Position numbers and translations under genes: made by a program. From assembly GCA_964035545.1 (NCBI GenBank), contig OZ037772.1, positions 12,770,818 through 12,834,817 on the forward strand: DNA of 64,000 nt, read 5' to 3'. This document shows, in pieces, positions 10,495-45,859 of this stretch. Position 1 is the stretch's first letter, and every line of letters begins with the position of its first letter. This stretch comes from Bugula neritina (Eukaryota; Animalia; Bryozoa). A model generated the notes under the pieces. It had not been told where the DNA came from. It saw nothing but the letters and a program-made list of their open reading frames with translations, and searched no databases.

Positions 10495-24940
<14,446 letters not shown>

Positions 24941-27681: not shown

Positions 27682-30600
27682 CTAAACTTTCTTTTCTGAC
27701 TGCGGTGCTGTGTTAGCCATAAATGAGTCATCAAAATGGCCCTCTGTAGCAAGCTGAGAATACCTTTCTTGAGAGAAGAGCTCAATGTTGGCTACTTGAT
27801 GTGGATAGTCACACTCTATGTCTTTGAAAGCTTGGCTCAGCACCACTGCCTGGTAGATGGGGGTTCTAAGCCCAAAGTTTACAGTGGACACAATCTCTCC
27901 AATAAGCATTCCAAGTGGCAAGAATTGAATTCCTTTTAAAACATAGAGTAAGCTTCCGCAATCTCCTGCGTTCAGATTCCTTGAAAATGCATTCAAAAGA
28001 AACTATTGTAATAATTCATTGTATTCTTCGATTATTTAAAAGTTGTGGTGTGAAGGACCTTATGCAACCTACAGTAATATTAGCAAAAGCTAAAAAAACA
28101 CATCAATTTTAAGTTTTTTTCTATTGAATTACATATTTGTAATGCATATTATGATGTATTTTTAAAAAAACTTGAGTGTATTAAAATAGAACTTACAGCA
28201 TATCTCCAGATGAGTCTTGTGAAGTCAATGCAAAGTTGATGTGGAGCCCAAACTTGGGTTTATCCAGGCTGTGTCTTAATCTAATATATACAATCTTTCC
28301 ATACATTCCTTGAATCAACACTTCCTGGCCAACCAGCTGTCTCAACTCTTCTTCTGTAGATATTTGCACGAGGTTGTTAGAAATCTGAAAACCTGTTGCC
28401 TGATTGCTATTTTCCTTTTTGATATTTTCTTCAAGGAATTTATTGCTTCTGCTGTCTAACACACTTTGCAGATGATAAGCCTGGCTGTGATGAATAGGTA
28501 CAAGTGCTATGTCATTCATAAACTTGTGAGGACATTGATGTAAAGTAGGCTGTGTACACTTTAGTTGAGGACAATCAAATTGACCCACCTGATAATACCA
28601 ATGGCGGTAGCCTAACAATAGAGGGTGTCCTAAGTCGACAGAGTATTTGCTCTCCTGCTTATCCACACACACAAAATGTAGGCTCCTGGAAGACTGGCCT
28701 TCAACTTCAGCTCGGACTTTTGAAATTAATGGTATTCTTTCTTCATCCCTGTTAGCATTATCTTCCGCTAAAACTAACTTTGCTGACTTTTCTGGTGAGA
28801 CACCTGAAGCCTCTTTGGTGCCAAGTTCAGTTTCATTATCGTGAATGGCAAGCTGCTTTAAATAAAATTTTTCTGGGGCTGCTAATTCTTGATTTTGTTT
28901 TGGGGTAAGGATTAAATGTGCTGGAGCCACTGCATACACCGACTTTTTTCCAGAAGGATCTTCTCTCCAAGTACAGCATGTATCAGCAAAAGCAAAAAGC
29001 TCACAAGTAGCATTTTGGGTAGGCTGCCACTTTTCCTTGTGCAATTTCTTTTGATGGAAGCTCAATACCTTTTCCCAGCTAAGCATTTTCATTGTGAAAG
29101 AATGGGTACCATCAATAAAATTAATTTCAAAATCTTTTAAGGATTCGCTTTGCAAGTATTCGTGAAGATCCTGTTTTATATTCAAAACATTTTGGCCAAT
29201 GATATAAATTTGTCTCCAGTCATCAGCAGATTGTATAACAGCGGTAGGTACGATGGCATGGCTTTCAAAAAGTCTACAAAACGATATATTTTTATTTGCT
29301 GCTCCATCTAGTGGTGCTTTAGCATAAGCTGTTAACTAAATTAAAATAAATAAATTATTGTTTGCTAAATGAAGATAATTATTTTGTTGTAATCAAAAGT
29401 ATATAAGTTTATTAAGATTTATAATGTCAAAATATGTTGATTAAAAGAAAAAAATTAACCAATAATGGCACTTCTATGATGGATTTTTGAAAAACGTAGT
29501 TACATCTTAAAATTTCAGAGCTAGAATTTTGTGGAAATAGAGAATTTGAAGATTGTTGAAAAAATCATTGAAATTTTTGTGGCCTTGTGACTTTAGTTGC
29601 AATAAAGGTGAGGTAGTTAATTGGCAAAATCACTTGAAATGTGATAGATTCATGAAGTAAAGCATTAAAAAATTCTTCAATTTGTATTTGTATGCAAATT
29701 ATCTTATGATTAATTTGAGTTAATACATAAACTGTAGTTAGAACTGCTAAATAATTCCATGATACCTTTCAATTTCAGCAGTCAACGACTCTGGTATGGG
29801 TTTGTATGGAGCTTGAGGTGTCAGGCTTCTAGTAATCTGATTTAGTACAACTTTAGCTGCAAATAAATTATAAAATAAACAGCAACATTTTAGTTTTCAA
29901 TATTAAATAATAAAATATTAGTACTGCTATTTGAAAAAAATATATGTCAATTATAGCAGAACATTAAACTTAGTATAATTACGATTATATATATTTACTA
30001 CTTCAAATTCAAAATTTTACATCAGACATGTGTTTGGAACTCATTTGCTAGCTCTTTTGGTGAAGAAAACAATAAAACCTAACTGCTGGTTAGCCCACCA
30101 GCCCTGCATTTTGTGCTTCGATCAAAATGGAAAAATGCAAATAAATTTAAAATCTGTTATGTCTAAGTGAAGCGAACTACAATTTAAAAAGCCAAATGGC
30201 AACATTTGTGTGCACTTTAAGCATCTTGAACAGTTTATAATTTAAACTACAAACAATCACTATAGTAAAGCTGTAACTATTATTTCTTTTGTTGTTTACT
30301 GCATAATCAGCTTTGACAATTAAGTTAGAAACTAGAAAATCTCAATCTAGTTTAAATTATAGAGAAAATATGTGCTAAAAGTTATTGAAACCAAGAATAT
30401 CCTATCCAATGCCAAACTCCACTTGAATAAAAAGATTCTTACTAAAATTGTCAAATGTTGACTTTAGGGCATTGACTTCTTGCTGCAGCCTTCCAATTTC
30501 AGCACTCTGATTCTGAAGCTGTGTGTGGACTTCTGTCCTAAATGGTTCAGAGTCTTTACCCTCAACAATCCCTTCTACTCTACTCTTCAGCTCATTGAAC

Positions 30601-31494
30601 GTTCTGCTCATATCCTCAAATCTGATTTTCAACTCTTGCTTCTCTTCCCCAGAGACCTCTTGATCAAGCTCATTTCTGTATTCTCTGAACTTTATATCGG
30701 CTAGATAGTAGGACTCAAATAGTTTGTCTACTTCATTGCCCACCAGTAAATCACTCTCTTCCGTGTCGAGGCTTGAAATACGTTTTACAATTTCACCAAG
30801 ACCAGAGCCATAAATGTTATTAAAAGTTGCAAATTTTATAGGAATATTCTGCTCTGAACAGTAGTTTTCCTACAAAACAAATTAACAGAATAATATTGTT
30901 ATGAGCTTATTCATTTCGAAATTTCAAACTTTGATAACATTTACTATATGACTATATAAAGTATTAAAGCGTTATCAATATTTTAGTACAGCAAATAAAA
31001 TAAGCTTGCATTTGAATAAAACTCTTAAGGAAATCATTATAGTTGTTAATGCAATAATTTTTTTCCAAATATAGCTACATACAGCCTTAATTACATTTCT
31101 CATAGTAGAGGCAACATAATATTGATAGATCCAGGTATTTATATTACATCCAATCATCAGATAGAATACTTCCGGTAGCCATGAGAACCTGCTGGAAGTG
31201 TTTTAATGCTACATACTTCTCAGCCTGAGCATCATTCTAACTTACCCCATAACTTCTAGACCTCATGTTGGAAACACTCACTGCCACTTTGTCAACACCA
31301 TCTAATAATAGAAGATTAACATTTCTTCAGATAAAATCTTCAGATAAAATGTTAAGATGTAATACATTATATCTTAACATTTTATCGTTGCTACTCTAAA
31401 GATGGGCACAGTGGTGCCCGAAATATCAGTAATAAAGTAATAAATCAACAATGTTTCTCGTATACTTATTTATTATTAAATTATTAGCTCGCAA

Positions 31495-31540
<46 letters not shown>

Positions 31541-32651
31541 CTGTAATATAATTCTTAATCAAAGCCTTACTTGCTTGTAATGGTAGTTGTTCCGAGCACA
31601 CTTTACAAAATGAGTCACTGCTACAAAATAAAACATACATCATTCAGGAAACTATCTATCAACTTCTAGTTCAAAGAAAATTAAATATTATAATACAAAA
31701 CTTGCTTAAGAGATCAGGCCGAAGACCAAATTTGGCCCTTTTTTATTTAAACTAAGGCTTTTTCACCCACTATTTGCCTTTAGTTAAGAGAAACTTTGTA
31801 GGACTACCTCAAATCCAAACAGGGCTTGCAGATGTAATGGTTGTTACTGCACCACTTAATTTCTGGAAAGCCTAAATCTTTTTCACAAATGCTACAAGTA
31901 GGCTTACCAAGCACCTAAAAGTAACAATGGACATATTACAACAATGTCTAAAATTAAAGCCGTAATGGACCCTTTTCAGAGGTCTCTGATTATCTCTTTA
32001 CAATTAAGAGTTGTGGTCTCCTAAAGGGAATAGGTTGAACCTTTGTATAATGAGCAAACTCATTAAAAATTTACAGTTTGGCTGCTACTTAAAATTCTAA
32101 TTCTAAGATGGATATTTTGGTATAAGCACGCATATTATTAGCAGTTCAAAATTTTTTTTAAAAATATTTCTTCATGGATAACTTTGACAAAAATAATCTT
32201 GAAAGCATACTTTGTTTCAAAAAGCATTAACTTAAAGCACTACAACGTAATAATATATTTTAAATTGTTACGGTCTTAGAAGTTTCTGATTCAGCCATTT
32301 TCTTTGCTATACACACTAAAATAAAAATGATAATATCATATAATTACAGTTAGGCAAACTAAAAGCAAACAGCTACTGTCAAATCAAAATTTCTAGACGT
32401 ATAATATAAGAGTTTGTATGAATTCTTATGTTATTATGAAGGTCTAGAAAGTGCCTTTTAATGCAATGCATGGAAATAATAGCAATTAGTGAAAATTATA
32501 TTTAATCTGATAATTTTTGTTTTTCCACTTTAGCTCTAATGGTATCAATAACTCGTAAACCTAAGCAAAGCTAACACAAATTAAAGCTAAAAGGAAAGTG
32601 GTTTGACTTACAATAATCAACTTCTTCTGATCTCAAAGAAAACTTGACCAT
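27682..32651 (-). CDS. Coiled-coil plus chymotrypsin-fold (PA clan) protease with a predicted His-Asp-Cys triad, ~660 aa, 6 coding exons
   Basis: Phase-consistent GT-AG exons 32651-32612, 31620-31571, 30869-30443, 29856-29766, 29273-28197 and 27979-27682 (1983 nt). Motifs: YAVAPAH (His codon 28918-28916), NDIALV (Asp 28513-28511), AGDCGSLLYV (Cys TGC 27960-27958), then LGMLIG. The first two exons are less certain. Confidence 0.75.
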
Positions 32652-39326: not shown

Positions 39327-40193
39327 ATGGAGACTGAAAATGCTAGAATGCAACCACCCCCAGTAGAAGGTGAGCGTAGAAATGCTGTTAATCCTGTGAA
39401 TCGTGAAGGAGAAGAAGCTTATAGACATTGCTTGAAAGCTCCCACCTTTACTGGGTCGGAAGATGTCGAACAATTTATACAAGAATTTAGAGAGGTAATG
39501 GAAGTTGCTCAATGGCCGCATAGAGTGGCCCTTATCAAATTGCGGAGGGCGGTGACGGAGCAAGCCAAGCCGTACGGAGTGGGAACGGACGTAGACGGCA
39601 TACTGGCTGCGCTGCGGGCCCGTTTTGGCACCTCCGTCATAGACGCCAGGACCAAGCTGGAGAGATTGTGCCGCACCCCGGGGACCTCGCTACAAGAACA
39701 TGCTGCGACGGTGAAGAAGCTGGCGCAGATTGCATATAGCGATCTGCCAGCACAACACCAAGAGCGTTACACCTATGACGCCTTTGTCCAGTCCCTAAAC
39801 GACTTGGGCCTAGACCATCACCTACGGGCTAAAGGGATAACCAGAATAGAGGATGCCCTGAAGGCTGGAGAAGCTTACCTGTTGGCTACCCAAATGCATC
39901 GAGCACAACGGAACCCACCAGTAGTTGGAGTCAGCGCTGCTCGGGCTACGACAGGCTCCGAAGCCCTCCCGCTGGAAGCCGAAGTGGACCGTATGGTAGA
40001 GATGCTAGGACAATTGGTGACCATTCTGGCCGGTGCTGGCCCCGGTCAGGCCTTGCGGATGCCCCCAACACCTGTGGGGCAAGGCTGGAGTAGCGCTGAT
40101 CAGGACCAGGGACAGAAAGGACGACCCCAATACCAGGGGGCGTTAAACTGTCACGGCCCGCGGACACTCTCCCTCCCCGCAGGCCGCAACTAA
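39327..40193 (+). CDS. gag: Gypsy Gag
   Basis: First ORF after the PBS, with capsid-like motifs PTFTGSEDVEQFIQEF..W..LRARFG and SLQEHA..LAQIAY. Confidence 0.85.
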   Translation: METENARMQPPPVEGERRNAVNPVNREGEEAYRHCLKAPTFTGSEDVEQFIQEFREVMEVAQWPHRVALIKLRRAVTEQAKPYGVGTDVDGILAALRARFGTSVIDARTKLERLCRTPGTSLQEHAATVKKLAQIAYSDLPAQHQERYTYDAFVQSLNDLGLDHHLRAKGITRIEDALKAGEAYLLATQMHRAQRNPPVVGVSAARATTGSEALPLEAEVDRMVEMLGQLVTILAGAGPGQALRMPPTPVGQGWSSADQDQGQKGRPQYQGALNCHGPRTLSLPAGRN

Positions 40194-43100
40194 AGGAGTA
40201 TGGTGGAACACGCCGTCGTCTGTCCGTACGGACCTGGCGGAACATTCTACCCGAGTGGCAGGTACCACGCAGGACTAGTAGGCCCGCACAACGGCCTAGT
40301 ACCTTTTCCCTGCCACTCGCTAACCGGTTTCACCGGTTACCTCGGGAGGAGGAGCCCGCCACTGAAATGGAGCCAGAAGGCCCAGTGGAGAGGCCCAAAC
40401 CCCGCCGGCACCAACCTCGCCGCCGGAAGCCCCGTAAACCACGGGTGGAACCCCCGCCGTCCTGTCAAACCAGGACAGCACATGCGGGGGGGGTGAAAGT
40501 ACAACCACATGGAGAGAGCTATTTCCTACCCGGAAAGGTGGCCGGCAACGCCGTCACTTTCCTGCTCGACTCCGGTTGTACTACCAACCTTCTCAGCCGT
40601 AGAGTCTTTGAGGCACTGCCCCGCCGGGACAGGGATAGAGTACGACCGTATACTGGAGAACATGGCACCCTGGCAGACGGGTCATGTATCCCCTTTTATG
40701 GTATTATCGAGCTCCCTGGGCGTGTCCGAGATCAGGCTGTACAGGAGACCTTTATCATAGGTCAACTGGAGGAAGATGCTATCCTCGGCATGCCCTTCTT
40801 GAAGCAACACCAGTGCCGAATAGATTTTAGTAAGTCGGTGGTGCTGATGGGCGGGCGAGAACTCGCCTGTGTGGATAAGTTTGGGCGTCCTCTGGTGGGC
40901 GGTGTTCAGGTAGTTCGGAACTGCACCGTACCCGGACGCTCCAGAGCTACTATCCACTGCCGAGTGAACAGCAACCGGATAGCCAGGCTCGGGGTCGTTG
41001 AAAGCGCGCACGAAAAGATCCAACTCGCCAGTAGTCTAAACCGACTAACTGAGCGAGGGGAGGTCTTAGTGCAGTGCGTCAACCCCTTTACCGAGCCCAT
41101 TGAGCTCCCAGCTGGGTCAATGCTGGGCCGGTTCCATTCCGTCCAGGAAGAGGACGTGGGCCCGTCGCTGGGTGACGCGACGGAGGCACCCCCTCGACAC
41201 CCTATTCAGGGACGAGGGGCAGTCCCGACACATCTCCGGGAGTTATACGAAACAGCCAGTGGCGGCTGCGCGAGTAACAGAGAACGCCAAGCTATGGCCA
41301 AGTTACTACGCGACTACGGTGATGTGTTCAGCAGCGGGGAGAATGACGTGGGACTGACTGGAATTGTCAGACACGAAATACCGCTGACTGCAGGGACAGT
41401 CCCTGTCCGGCAGCCCACGCGCAGGCTGGGGCCGGAGAAAGAGAAGGAGGTTAGCCGACAAGTACGGGATCTTCTGGACCGGGGACTGATAGAGCCCGCC
41501 CATAGTGCGTGGAGCTCGCCAGTCGTACTGGTCCGGAAGAAAGACGGCAGTTGGCGGTTCTGTGTGGACTACCGCAAACTCAATAGCGTAACCATACAGG
41601 ACGCCTACCCTCTACCTCGCATTGACGAGTCATTGGACGCCCTAGCCGGCAGCAAGTACTTCAGTACGTTAGACTTGCTAAGCGGCTATTGGCAGGTTCC
41701 TCTGAGTCCCGACGCCCAGGAGAAAGCGGCGTTTATCACACGGGACGGTTTGTGGAAGTGGAAGGTGCTGCCCTTCGGGTTAACCTCCGCCCCGGCCACC
41801 TTCCAGAGGCTGATGGAACAAGTCCTTAGCGGACTCCATTGGAAGACACTGCTGGTCTACCTCGATGATGTCATCGTAATCTCTCCAGACTTCGAGACAC
41901 ATGTCAGTCGTCTGCAGGAGGTTTTCGAGAGACTCCGAGGTGCCGGTCTTAAGCTCAAACCTTCCAAGTGCGCTCTATTGCAGCCGGAGGTCAAGTACCT
42001 GGGGCACGTTGTCGGTCGAAACGGCGTGGCAACGGACCCCGAAAAGGTACGGGCAGTAGAAGACTGGGTCACCCCCCAAGACTTGACCGGACTCCGGGCT
42101 TTCTTGGGGCTGGTAGGGTATTATAGGCAATACATACCAGACTTTGCGGGCATAGCCCAGCCGCTAAACCGGCTTACCGCAAAGGGAGTGACGTGGCAGT
42201 GGACTCCAGTCGAACAAGAAGCGTTCGACCGCCTCAAGGGCTGCCTCCTAGCGGCGCCCATCTTGGCCTACCCAGACCCCACTCTGGAGTACATCCTAGA
42301 CACAGACGCCAGTGACCAGAATGTTGGCGCTGTGCTGTCGCAAGTGCAGGACGGCCGAGAAGTAGTAGTAGCCTACTACAGCAAGTCTCTCTCTCCCGCT
42401 GAACGAAATTACTGCACTACCCGCAAGGAGCTGCTGGCAGTAATCAAGTCAGTGAAGCACTTCAGACCATACCTATATGGCAGGAAGTTCCGGCTGCGTA
42501 CGGATCATGCCTCGCTGATCTGGTTGTGCAGGAGAGCAGAGCCCTCCAGTCAGGTCGCCCGGTGGCTCGAAATCCTAGCTGAATTCTCGTACCGGATCGA
42601 ACACCGACCGGGCAAGAGACACAGCAATGCAGATGGGTTGAGTCGCCGACCTGACGGAGGTTGTAAACAGTGTCTCAACATCGAGAGGAGGGATGGAGGT
42701 CCCCCACGATGCGAGTTGGAGACGCTGGCTCATCACGGAGCACCGTTTGACTGGGATCAAGGTCAACTCAGGCAAAGAGTTGATGAGTCCCCGGAGGATG
42801 TACAAAACCTCCGCGCCAACCCTATACTGGCCGGTAATGTTCGAGAGCTGAAGAAGCTCCAAGAAGAGCTGCCGGGAGTCGTGGCAGACATCTACCGGGC
42901 CAAAAGGGAAGGGCGACGACCCAGCGAGGAACGCATACGACAGGGATGCGCCGAGTTCCGGCTATACTGTCAGCGTTGGGACTCGCTGCGGATCGGGCAG
43001 GATGGGTTGCTAACCATCTCTCTAGCTGCCAGCGGCAGACACCCGGAAAGGAAGAGGGTAGTCTGCCCCACAGCCATCCGCCGTGAGTTGATTTGGGATA

Positions 43101-44182
43101 CTCACAAGCAGGCTCACGCAGGGGTCAAGCGAGTGATATCCAAATTACGACTCCGGTGGTATTGGCCGCAGATGGAGCGTGACGTCCGGCTCAGAGTCAA
43201 ACAGTGTGAGATCTGCCAGGCCAGTAAGCATAGCCGCCCCCCTGGTGAAGCAGGACGGCGGAGGCTATATGCTGGTAGGCCCTGGCAAGTGGTCGCTGTA
43301 GACCTGGTCGGACCCATGCCCCTGACCCCCAGAGGCAATAATTGGATCCTAGTACTAACCGACCACTTTACTAGGTGGGCGGATGCTCTGGCTATCCCAG
43401 ATGCATCAGCCCCAACAGTGGCCAGGGCACTAGACCAACATGTATTCTGTTATTTTGGGCTTCCCGAACAGATACACTCTGATCAAGGCGCTCAATTCCA
43501 GTCTCAACTGATGAGCGACCTTTGCCACCTCTGGGGAGTAAATCAGAGCAGGACCACCCCCTACCACCCTCAAGGTAACGGGGTGGTGGAGCGCAACAAC
43601 CGGATGCTAGGTGATGCGCTCCGGAGTCTCCTCCTTGGACGAGGTCAAGAGGAATGGGATACGGTGTTGCCGCAAGTCATGCGTGCATACCGTAGCACCC
43701 CACACACCAGTACTGGTGAGACCCCAAACCTCTTGATGCTCGGGAGAGAGACTCGTGTCCCTGACCATCTCACCTATCACGTTCCAGAGCAGGATAACTC
43801 AGTCCATGAGTATGCCAGTGAACTAGTGGAACGGATGAAGGCCGCACACGAGATACTGCGTCAACAGCAGTGGAAGGTGCGGCACGAAGATTCCGATGAA
43901 CCACCCCTCTATCAAAGAGGAGATAAGGTGTGGATGGTCAATTACCGTAGGCGCCGCGGACAGGCTGATAAGCTGAAGCCTAAGTTCGTAGGCCCCTACG
44001 TGGTCGTCGAGGCTATGCCCAATCATACGTACAAGATTGAGCGCTCAGGACAGGTGTCTATCCAGAATGAGTCTCGCTTGAAACCGTATTGGGCTAGCCC
44101 TGACGGAGTGGGAGAAGCCCCCCCCGTTGTTAGAGCCAAGGAGGCAGACAACGACGCGCGGGCGACGGCGGCATGGACCTGA
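40094..44182 (+). CDS. pol: Gypsy Pol (PR-RT-RNase H-INT), entered by frameshift
   Basis: FLLDSG protease; WRFCVDYRKLN, LPFGL and YLDD in RT; DTDAS..RTDH in RNase H; HKQAH..CEIC, VDLVGP, SDQG and VERNN in integrase; GPY motif. Confidence 0.95.
40142..40185 (+). promoter_or_regulatory. Probable -1 ribosomal frameshift signal (gag to pol)
   Basis: The pol (-1) frame is open from 40094 and overlaps the end of gag. G TTA AAC at 40142-40148, a 6-nt spacer, then stem GGCCCGCGG (40155-63) / CCGCAGGCC (40177-85). Confidence 0.7.
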
Positions 44183-44768
44183 ATACGAAGTGGTCATACC
44201 GCGGGAGGAAAACTTGGTGAGAGAGGAGCGGCAGCTTTTGTCAACAGAAGCGTGTCCGCCACCGCCAAGTCTAATTCCATCACTTCCAGAAACCGAGCCG
44301 GTTCCGGAAGTGCAAACCCCCACGGAGGGAGGGGCTCCATCCGGAGAACAAGAAGAGGTGACCACTAACGGTGAAGTAGAGACGCCATTAGAGGCCCCTA
44401 CTAACGAACCGACAAGTGTGTCACCCCCCCTAGAGAGGGGACAGCGTACGAGGAAGCCCCCACCGTATTTGAAAGACTTCATATGTGACTGCATTAGAAG
44501 CGGCGCACATGAAAGTCTAGGGGAAAACCGTACGATAAAATGTTGGAGTTGTGAACCCCACGCAAATATCAACTTTTGCGAGGGCGGAATAGTGGGAGGA
44601 ATTAATGCGCGTAAAGCAAATAGTTCCGACCTCGTGCCTCAGAAACGATGCTCAGCCTTTTCTTATGCTGACATCGCCAAAGGCAGACGTATCTCACAAC
44701 CAGCTCCAACCTTACCAAGAACGTTGAGTATGGACATTAATACCGAGTTCCCAGGTAAGCCAGTATAA
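44127..44768 (+). CDS. Probable C-terminal tail of Pol, split from it by a +1 indel in a C8 run
   Basis: Removing one C from 44118-44125 gives EAPPLLEPRRQ... continuing to RGQRTRKPPPYLKDF, the R..RKPP..L.D(F/Y) motif typical of LTR-element integrase tails. Confidence 0.7.
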   Translation: MLEPRRQTTTRGRRRHGPEYEVVIPREENLVREERQLLSTEACPPPPSLIPSLPETEPVPEVQTPTEGGAPSGEQEEVTTNGEVETPLEAPTNEPTSVSPPLERGQRTRKPPPYLKDFICDCIRSGAHESLGENRTIKCWSCEPHANINFCEGGIVGGINARKANSSDLVPQKRCSAFSYADIAKGRRISQPAPTLPRTLSMDINTEFPGKPV

Positions 44769-44785
44769 GTCTTGTATTCCTATTC

Positions 44786-45859
44786 ATGGAAACGGGCTCG
44801 ATGCCAGTAGATTCTGAACTAATTCAGCAGATTGAATCAGAATTACTGGGAACCACGTTTCATGTGAATGACGATGAAGACACTGTAATGGCCGATGGTC
44901 TGTTAGACCTGGAGCTAGACACTGTTCTTGGTCAGTCCACACATGATTCATCAGTTCCTCGAGTGCATTCCAAAAGCAGTGACTCTCAGGCTAGCAACGG
45001 TCGACAGTCACTAGAATTAGGTTGTAAAGATCCACCGCGATCTAACACTAATTCTACTTTTGTAGACACACTCGCGCCCGTCTCTCCGGGCATGCCTTCT
45101 CTAGAGATGGCGTGGGACTCAGAGCCGGCCCCAACAACTTCTACCACCAGGAAACTGCCACCCCAGTTGGAAGCAACCTCCAACTGGATTACCCCTGCCA
45201 CAGAGAGAGAGATCAGGACCCATCAAGGAGGTGAGGGTAATCGTGAATGCAACCTCTGCCAACAGCGATTCACGACCCACCGCAGACTAAAAGTACACTT
45301 GCTGCAACACTACATCACCACTTTCTGCCCTTGCGGAGAATATAGCTACAATCGTGATTACCTGTTGCGGCACCAACGTACTATGCAGTGTTATCAAGGG
45401 CATGTCTATGAAGTAGACGAATCATCCTATCCTGCTTTTCTCAACGCCATCAAACCACTCATCACTGACTCAGCTCGGCTATCTCGCCTGGAGCAAGGCT
45501 TCCCTTCCCCGCGACCCATCATCTCTGGAGCCGCAGATAAACCTACACAGTCTACTAACTCTCCACCTCACAGTCCTATACGCATGCCGCATACCTTTCC
45601 TCGTGTCGTACTACAGAGAGTAGACACAAATGCGTATACACTCCCTCCTCCTCTTCCATCCTCAGAGCGGAAACGACACAGGCAACCAACTTCCTCTCGT
45701 TCGTCCCCCTGGGCCCGTAACCTACGTGAGGTAGAAGCTAGGGCGCATGACTTGGAGCAAGAAGTGTACAGGCTGGCCCCACGAGTACAGGCAGCCTCCA
45801 GTGGACTCAAATATTTACAGGAGTCTATTAAGCGCATGAAACGTGCGGCCCGCAGTTAA
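44786..45859 (+). CDS. Gypsy ORF3: acidic/disordered N-terminus, two C2H2-like zinc fingers, Pro/Ser linker, C-terminal coiled coil (357 aa); not env
   Basis: Intact ATG-to-TAA ORF inside the LTRs containing CNLCQQRFTTHRRLKVHLLQH and CPCGEYSYNRDYLLRHQRTMQC. No signal peptide or transmembrane segment is visible. Confidence 0.8.
   Translation: METGSMPVDSELIQQIESELLGTTFHVNDDEDTVMADGLLDLELDTVLGQSTHDSSVPRVHSKSSDSQASNGRQSLELGCKDPPRSNTNSTFVDTLAPVSPGMPSLEMAWDSEPAPTTSTTRKLPPQLEATSNWITPATEREIRTHQGGEGNRECNLCQQRFTTHRRLKVHLLQHYITTFCPCGEYSYNRDYLLRHQRTMQCYQGHVYEVDESSYPAFLNAIKPLITDSARLSRLEQGFPSPRPIISGAADKPTQSTNSPPHSPIRMPHTFPRVVLQRVDTNAYTLPPPLPSSERKRHRQPTSSRSSPWARNLREVEARAHDLEQEVYRLAPRVQAASSGLKYLQESIKRMKRAARS

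Follow-up and report, generated by a model that had tools for sequence, protein, structure and literature searches.

Several families of chymotrypsin-fold proteases offer a comparison for the gene described here. HtrA-type enzymes carry a small-residue-plus-His motif and, after the catalytic Asp, "DIAL", and enzymes of the HtrA and FAM111A type are intracellular or compartmental proteases under assembly control. Proteases that combine the chymotrypsin fold with a cysteine nucleophile have been described as viral (MEROPS). Cellular proteases of the PA clan are described as serine enzymes in published phylogenies (PMC4576821), and rice NAL1 has the catalytic triad H234/D291/S385 (PMC12012508). 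We analyzed a 64,000-nucleotide (nt) stretch of the bryozoan Bugula neritina genome (assembly GCA_964035545.1, contig OZ037772.1, positions 12,770,818 to 12,834,817), hereafter the window, whose minus strand carries a gene for a protease-like protein with Cys in the place of the nucleophilic Ser. We consider it probable, though well short of certain, that this is an intact eight-exon gene encoding a RING finger, three helices, a linker and a divergent PA-clan domain with a His372–Asp507–Cys619 triad and a probable zinc site, that it is of cellular descent, and that it is one member of a fast-evolving bryozoan family with about 25 copies in each genome. Neither a cellular family of PA-clan cysteine proteases nor the present bryozoan family turned up in our searches of the literature.

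Gene structure

Three open reading frame (ORF) pieces were present on the minus strand of the window (30402–30743, 28193–29185 and 27682–27996), and the motifs AVAPAH, FMNDIAL, GDCGS and LGMLIGE followed one another in this order along that strand, as a preliminary description of the locus had reported. Reading of the minus strand combined with a scripted phase check gave a revised model of eight exons between 32298 and 27682. Its coding length was 2130 nt (710 codons) with zero in-frame stops, all introns ran GT...AG with a pyrimidine tract, and every phase was compatible. The length of ~660 amino acids (aa) proposed at first was superseded, the model having four extra upstream exons that include the RING. 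That description also did not include several features reported below, namely a linker exon, a RING finger, a near-neutral pattern of substitution and a zinc-like motif of Cys and His. The exons and candidate functional residues are listed below.

32272..32298, minus strand: exon 1, ATG (at 32298) plus eight codons, hydrophilic, donor GTAACA
31808..31914, minus strand: exon 2, RING ligands 1–6, C-x2-C-x11-C-x3-H-x2-C-x2-C
31571..31620, minus strand: exon 3, final RING C-x2-C pair; phase 2 in, phase 1 out
31246..31301, minus strand: exon 4, 19-codon spacer that returns the frame to phase 0
30443..30869, minus strand: exon 5, helical region, with helices at 38–67, 74–103 and 110–134 of the exon product
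29766..29856, minus strand: exon 6, 91-nt linker exon, product PYKPIPESL..IE
28197..29273, minus strand: exon 7, N-terminal extension, beta-barrel 1 and the larger part of barrel 2
28918–28916, minus strand: codon of the candidate catalytic His372, exon 7
28573–28526, minus strand: C-x4-C-x7-C-x-H motif (C487, C492, C500, H502), exon 7
28513–28511, minus strand: codon of the candidate catalytic Asp507, exon 7
27682..27979, minus strand: exon 8, GDCGS, last strands of barrel 2 and C-terminal helix; coding 27979–27685, stop 27684–27682
27960–27958, minus strand: TGC codon of the candidate nucleophile Cys619, exon 8

The three ORF pieces had been proposed to join directly. This stood for the last two, since the exon 7 donor (CT/GTAAGT) and the exon 8 acceptor (caag/G) are in phase and the join is placed identically in the annotated paralogues P0002, P0047 and P0015. 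It did not stand for the first two: exon 5 exits in phase 1 and exon 7 requires phase 2, a mismatch that excludes a direct join at the best splice sites and that is bridged by the 91-nt exon 6. The product of exon 6 is homologous to the pre-protease linker in P0015, P0017 and P0046. The P0015 gene, from the bryozoan Watersipora subatra, has a small exon equivalent to exon 6, an intron at the matching position ahead of the large exon, and, as in the window gene, a phase-2 intron four residues ahead of G-D-C-G. Because neither exon 6 nor the conserved start of exon 7 contains an in-frame ATG, upstream coding exons are needed. Exon 1 was assigned from splice sites alone; its sequence is identical in two further B. 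neritina loci (L049 and L050, described below), in which exon 3 is conserved and exon 4 carries an in-frame 6-nt insertion.

The predicted N-terminus is hydrophilic and has no signal peptide, and the protein ends ~90 residues past the nucleophile. The protein is probably intracellular, in agreement with the cytosolic location and missing signal peptide put forward previously.

Protease fold and structural relatives

The fold was modeled on the annotated paralogue P0002 (B. neritina EB796_006759), which is 45% identical to the window protein over exon 7 and contains both protease halves. The AlphaFold2 (AF2) model, built from a 30-sequence alignment (A2), had a mean predicted local distance difference test (pLDDT) score of 76.3 and a predicted template modeling (pTM) score of 0.74. 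A Foldseek search of this model against the PDB returned rice NAL1 at all of ranks 1–27 (best E 5e-6), followed by thrombin, factor B, Seneca Valley virus 3C (E 3e-3) and TEV protease; the first viral match stood at rank 32. Structural comparison with VIA gave the highest Z score to NAL1 (14.6, 246 residues aligned), followed by HtrA1 (11.9), Deg2/Deg9 (~11.7), FAM111A (11.4), and DegS, DegP, alpha-lytic and Streptomyces proteases (~11). Z was at least 8 for 782 of the 998 PA-type chains, and none of the top 50 chains by Z was viral. Language-model and shape searches of the ESM Atlas retrieved clusters of the Nal1_C, S64 and Trypsin_2 types, some of them from molluscs.

His112 of the P0002 model follows a strand at the start of a helix, Asp266 opens a strand, and GDCG (376–379) lies ahead of a strand hairpin. 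These are the canonical positions of the triad residues in chymotrypsin-type proteases. When residues 53–454 of the model were aligned to NAL1 184–458, H112, D266 and C378 fell within ~10 residues of the NAL1 triad positions. Assignment of the window domain to the PA clan (chymotrypsin/trypsin fold), with His, Asp and Cys in that order and at the expected secondary-structure positions, is supported by this model of a relative, and the fold proposed in the preliminary description was retained.

NAL1, with which fungal Ssy5 (peptidase S64) is grouped here, is the best structural match (234–246 residues aligned by VIA) and resembles the window protein in being intracellular rather than secreted and in having an N-terminal extension and large insertions in its trypsin fold. 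It differs in its nucleophile, which is Ser385 in NAL1 (PMC12012508) and Cys in the window protein, Ser being found in 11 paralogues of the latter; the NAL1_N domain is also absent from the window protein, where the RING, helices and linker stand instead. The S1C proteases HtrA, DegP and DegS and human FAM111A are similar in fold, and the DIAL and PAH motifs of the window protein resemble those of HtrA-type enzymes. They use Ser throughout where the window protein has Cys, the PDZ domain of HtrA has no counterpart in it, and the insertions of the window family are far longer.

The picornavirus 3C/2A, potyvirus NIa and coronavirus 3CL proteases share with the window protein the chymotrypsin fold and a His, an acidic residue and a Cys in G-x-C-G, and by analogy the same thiol chemistry would be expected. 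An old domesticated viral 3C-like gene had been suggested earlier as one possible origin. Descent from a 3C/2A-like cysteine protease of a picorna-like RNA virus would fit the GxCG motif and the His-Asp-Cys order, the Seneca Valley virus 3C match, and matches of the P0002 model to picorna-like polyproteins in the viral library BFVD (best E 1.5e-4, with lower TM); the zinc-like site also recalls enterovirus 2A and hepatitis C virus NS3. Cellular serine proteases nevertheless match better by both E value and Z score, the DIAL and PAH motifs resemble those of HtrA/S1-type enzymes, and 11 paralogues have Ser. Furthermore, the window gene is cellular, contains introns, is present in many copies, is joined to cellular domains, has Ser-type sisters and lacks a polyprotein context. 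No viral genes were found adjacent to the protease gene, including helicase, polymerase or capsid ORFs. We regard a viral source as highly improbable. The nearest folds (NAL1, HtrA and FAM111A), the 11 GDSG-type paralogues and the intron positions conserved between bryozoan families are best explained by a cellular source and a switching nucleophile, rather than by a domesticated virus or a sequencing error; a host origin with a Ser/Cys switch had been the other option considered at first.

Sequence family and conserved residues

A HMMER search of 1.84 billion representatives yielded only 26 matches to the protease domain, and every named family match came from B. neritina or W. subatra. Word-index homologue searches gave no named match outside bryozoans. 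When each exon product and 30 family members were compared with Pfam, no protease family was recovered (no Trypsin, Trypsin_2 or Peptidase_C3-type family), the near-miss being DUF3924 with E 0.001 and 19.5 bits against a cut-off of 21. As judged from these searches, the window protease falls under no sequence-based family definition and is invisible to Pfam.

The columns of alignment A2 that are invariant (P0002 numbering) were C246, C259, H261, D266 and F359, and those nearly invariant were H112, C251, N265, A268 and L269. A further alignment (A3; 27 sequences, 34% mean column identity) showed solely C or S in the nucleophile column, and both Gly of G-x-[CS]-G were invariant. Alignment A1, in which the tails of exon-7-only proteins were misaligned onto the GDCG region, was not used for the fold.

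The C-x4-C-x7-C-x-H motif lies directly ahead of the catalytic Asp and is kept in the Cys-type paralogues and at least one Ser-type paralogue. Its residues C487, C492, C500 and H502 are candidate ligands of a probable structural zinc site. A divergent Ser-type paralogue (L046/L015, G000:C3:21646911-21648447) has G-Q-S-G, keeps the His and Asp, and lacks this motif, so the zinc-like site is not universal in the family.

The candidate His and Asp are ~135 residues apart owing to large insertions, which could occlude the site. This bears on the possibility that the trypsin-fold domain is catalytically silent and acts as a binding or scaffold module for a RING ligase, its Cys being no nucleophile. 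The C-terminal domains of TRIM-like proteins usually bind targets. Such a pseudoprotease would, however, leave unexplained why His and Asp show little or no variation and why the nucleophile column admits only two residues, both chemically competent, among 27 sequences. Three codon routes (TGY, AGY and TCT) all lead to Cys or Ser, which is hard to explain without selection on the nucleophile. We consider a silent domain distinctly unlikely and prefer an active, Cys-dependent protease.

Cysteine and serine at the nucleophile

Exon 8 had 29 matches in the 216-Mb window genome, with a readable motif in 25. Cys was found in 14 of these copies (all TGY) and Ser in the other 11 (all AGY). Cys also occurs in four B. 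neritina proteins (P0002, P0033, P0034 and P0047) and in XP_067949544 (P0015) of W. subatra. A B. neritina contig in GenBank (VXIV02000785.1) carries two copies of the window gene ~27 kb apart, L049 (10814–31698) and L050 (37612–54987), which are 86–96% identical in DNA to the window gene and 94–98% identical to each other. L050 has the codons GAT-TGT-GGA (Cys) and L049 has GAT-TCT-GGA, which specifies Ser by a different codon route. They may have arisen by tandem duplication, or the assembly may have joined two haplotypes; if they are haplotypes, the Ser/Cys difference would be an allelic polymorphism.

A Cys codon could also stand here through an error in sequencing or assembly, or because a serine protease carries a private variant, TGC being one substitution from AGC or TCC and L049 reading TCT (Ser). 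Yet a DNA contig from run X1, at depth 58, spans 27787–31364 with zero differing letters and agrees with TGC at 27958–27960, its sample possibly being the assembly's own. Cys is moreover present in 13 other paralogues, in the closest B. neritina copy (L050) and in W. subatra. An error or private variant is essentially refuted, and Cys as a conserved trait of the family, arising from neither sequencing nor assembly, is supported by these comparisons.

Ser and Cys had to be exchanged twice on the best tree of exon 8, computed with the nucleophile masked. Holding all Cys rows together, as expected if the Cys forms arose once, was not rejected (approximately unbiased test, p-AU 0.064). The TCT-Ser codon of L049 represents a further recent change within an otherwise all-Cys clade. 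Ser (AGY) is likely ancestral because all structural relatives use Ser; on this basis we infer the root and the direction of the Ser/Cys change. Close paralogues that differ in Ser and Cys, even near-identical copies, are a natural counterpart of laboratory nucleophile-exchange experiments, and with such a family the tolerance of an active site for a changed catalytic atom could be tested directly.

RING finger and helical region

Exons 2 and 3 together encode a full C3HC4 pattern, C-x2-C-x11-C-x3-H-x2-C-x2-C, ~8 residues, then C-x2-C. Read directly, its spacing fits the RING definition C-x2-C-x9-39-C-x1-3-H-x2-3-C-x2-C-x4-48-C-x2-C with all eight ligands. The AF2 model of exon 5 consisted of three helices of 25–30 residues (pLDDT 77, pTM 0.73), and comparison with Pfam gave only weak coiled-coil-type noise. 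The N-terminal coiled coil first proposed was therefore correct as to helical character and gave way, in its form, to this three-helix arrangement. No Cys/His-rich motif indicating a B-box was found between the RING and the helices, in exon 4 (19 codons) or exon 5.

The arrangement resembles RING E3 ligases of the TRIM/RBCC type in the order of an N-terminal C3HC4 RING, a helical region and a variable C-terminal domain. It differs from them in that no B-box was found, in its modeled three-helix unit instead of one long antiparallel coiled coil, and in its C-terminal protease instead of PRY-SPRY, NHL or similar domains. No TRIM-family hidden Markov model (HMM) match was obtained for the window gene.

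Paralogues of the RING exon occur at three nearby positions on the chromosome and those of exon 5 at two positions on the same chromosome; the two co-occur at two or three further sites within 100 kb. No protease exon was found near these neighboring RING-helix paralogues, and their downstream parts had no recognizable domain. RING plus helices thus define a gene family of this region, and the protease module appears to have been shuffled onto it. Ankyrin repeats form an alternative N-terminal module in other members of the protease family (P0017, P0046).

RING and helical exons in the order of the window gene, without a protease exon, were located at G000:C8:12705326-12707968 and 12756191-12765672 (loci L047 and L048), 14–65 kb before the start of the window. 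One RING-helix locus adjoins a 1984-aa retroelement pol-type ORF (L048 221–6175, minus strand). To judge from L047 and L048, the RING-helix genes of this region may form a family whose C-termini differ.

Selective constraint

A number of observations weigh against an active, RING-linked PA-clan enzyme encoded by a functional gene. Profile searches of PDB sequences with alignments A2 and A3 returned nothing meaningful, and the Nal1_C HMM (PF25819) matched none of 30 family members at E <= 10. The same HMM also found nothing at E <= 1 in the whole genome, which is weak evidence, control genomes being equally silent. The fold is that of the 45%-identical P0002, not of the window protein itself. 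Only splice phase and proximity attach exons 1–5 to exons 6–8, so that this linkage must be taken as provisional, and the sole run found as RNA evidence for the locus comprised DNA-like contigs without splice joints. Exon 2, used alone as a single-exon query against Pfam, matched Sina_RING with E 0.005 and 17.4 bits, below the cut-off of 29.3.

The substitution pattern adds to these points. The ratio of nonsynonymous to synonymous differences per site (pN/pS) of the window gene was 0.97 against L049 and 0.93 against L050, with 48–60 nonsynonymous and 10–11 synonymous changes in exon 7. Exon identity to these copies (94.5–97.4%) was about that of introns and flanks (93.9–96.0%). The window copy may be under little constraint, and the near-neutral ratio is compatible with either diversifying selection or weak constraint.

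Together with the lack of RNA support, these values would fit a window copy that is unconstrained and heading toward a pseudogene within an otherwise functional family, its intact frame reflecting recency. Such a copy would be expected to have acquired stops or indels under neutral drift at ~5% divergence (a rough estimate), whereas none of its eight exons or 14 splice sites is disrupted across the 710 codons and the triad, zinc-like ligands and RING ligands are all kept; diversifying selection likewise predicts a ratio near 1. L049 and L050 contain scattered 1-nt deletions and one stop, and these are probably assembly errors because P0045, an independent L050-type product, reads through. We judge incipient pseudogenization unlikely. 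The intact frame and retained ligands favor a living gene, short of proof.

Proposed mechanism and role

For the eight-exon protein as modeled, His372, oriented by Asp507, would deprotonate the thiol of Cys619, which would attack the scissile bond to give a thioester acyl-enzyme; the oxyanion hole would be formed by backbone NH groups of the G-D-C-G turn. Recruitment of an E2, self-association, or both would fall to the RING-helical module, and ubiquitin ligation could in this way be linked to the cutting of a bound target or of the protein itself. If true, the fusion would be an unusual pairing of ubiquitin ligase and endoprotease on one polypeptide.

Because of the copy number, domain shuffling and near-neutral rate, the gene suggests a role of the conflict or innate-immunity type. 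More tentatively, and as a conjecture that we would not yet favor, the family may represent a nucleophile-permissive, Pfam-invisible cellular branch in which functional Ser and Cys enzymes interconvert repeatedly (AGY/TGY, TGT/TCT), a cutting effector being carried on swappable ankyrin or RING-helix modules in fast-evolving intracellular defense and, in the window gene, coupled to ubiquitin ligation. As a family invisible to Pfam, it illustrates lineage-specific enzymology in poorly annotated invertebrate genomes.

Window surroundings

Run X1 depth rose from ~58 to ~25,000 in intron 3 (31303–31463) and to ~11,000 in intron 1 (31947–32107), and positions 31386–31324 match the B. neritina locus over a short inverted stretch. 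The depth peaks are probably high-copy miniature repeats. Intron 3 also contains a long (TA)n microsatellite (31487–31548), at which the run X1 contigs break.

Elsewhere in the window, a block at 39327–45859 has 51–59% G+C and plus-strand ORFs of 288, 1271, 213 and 357 aa; it corresponds to a Gypsy-type element that neither adjoins nor forms part of the protease gene. A 2-kb block at 18001–20000 has 10% G+C against 30–35% around it and is presumably a simple or low-complexity repeat.

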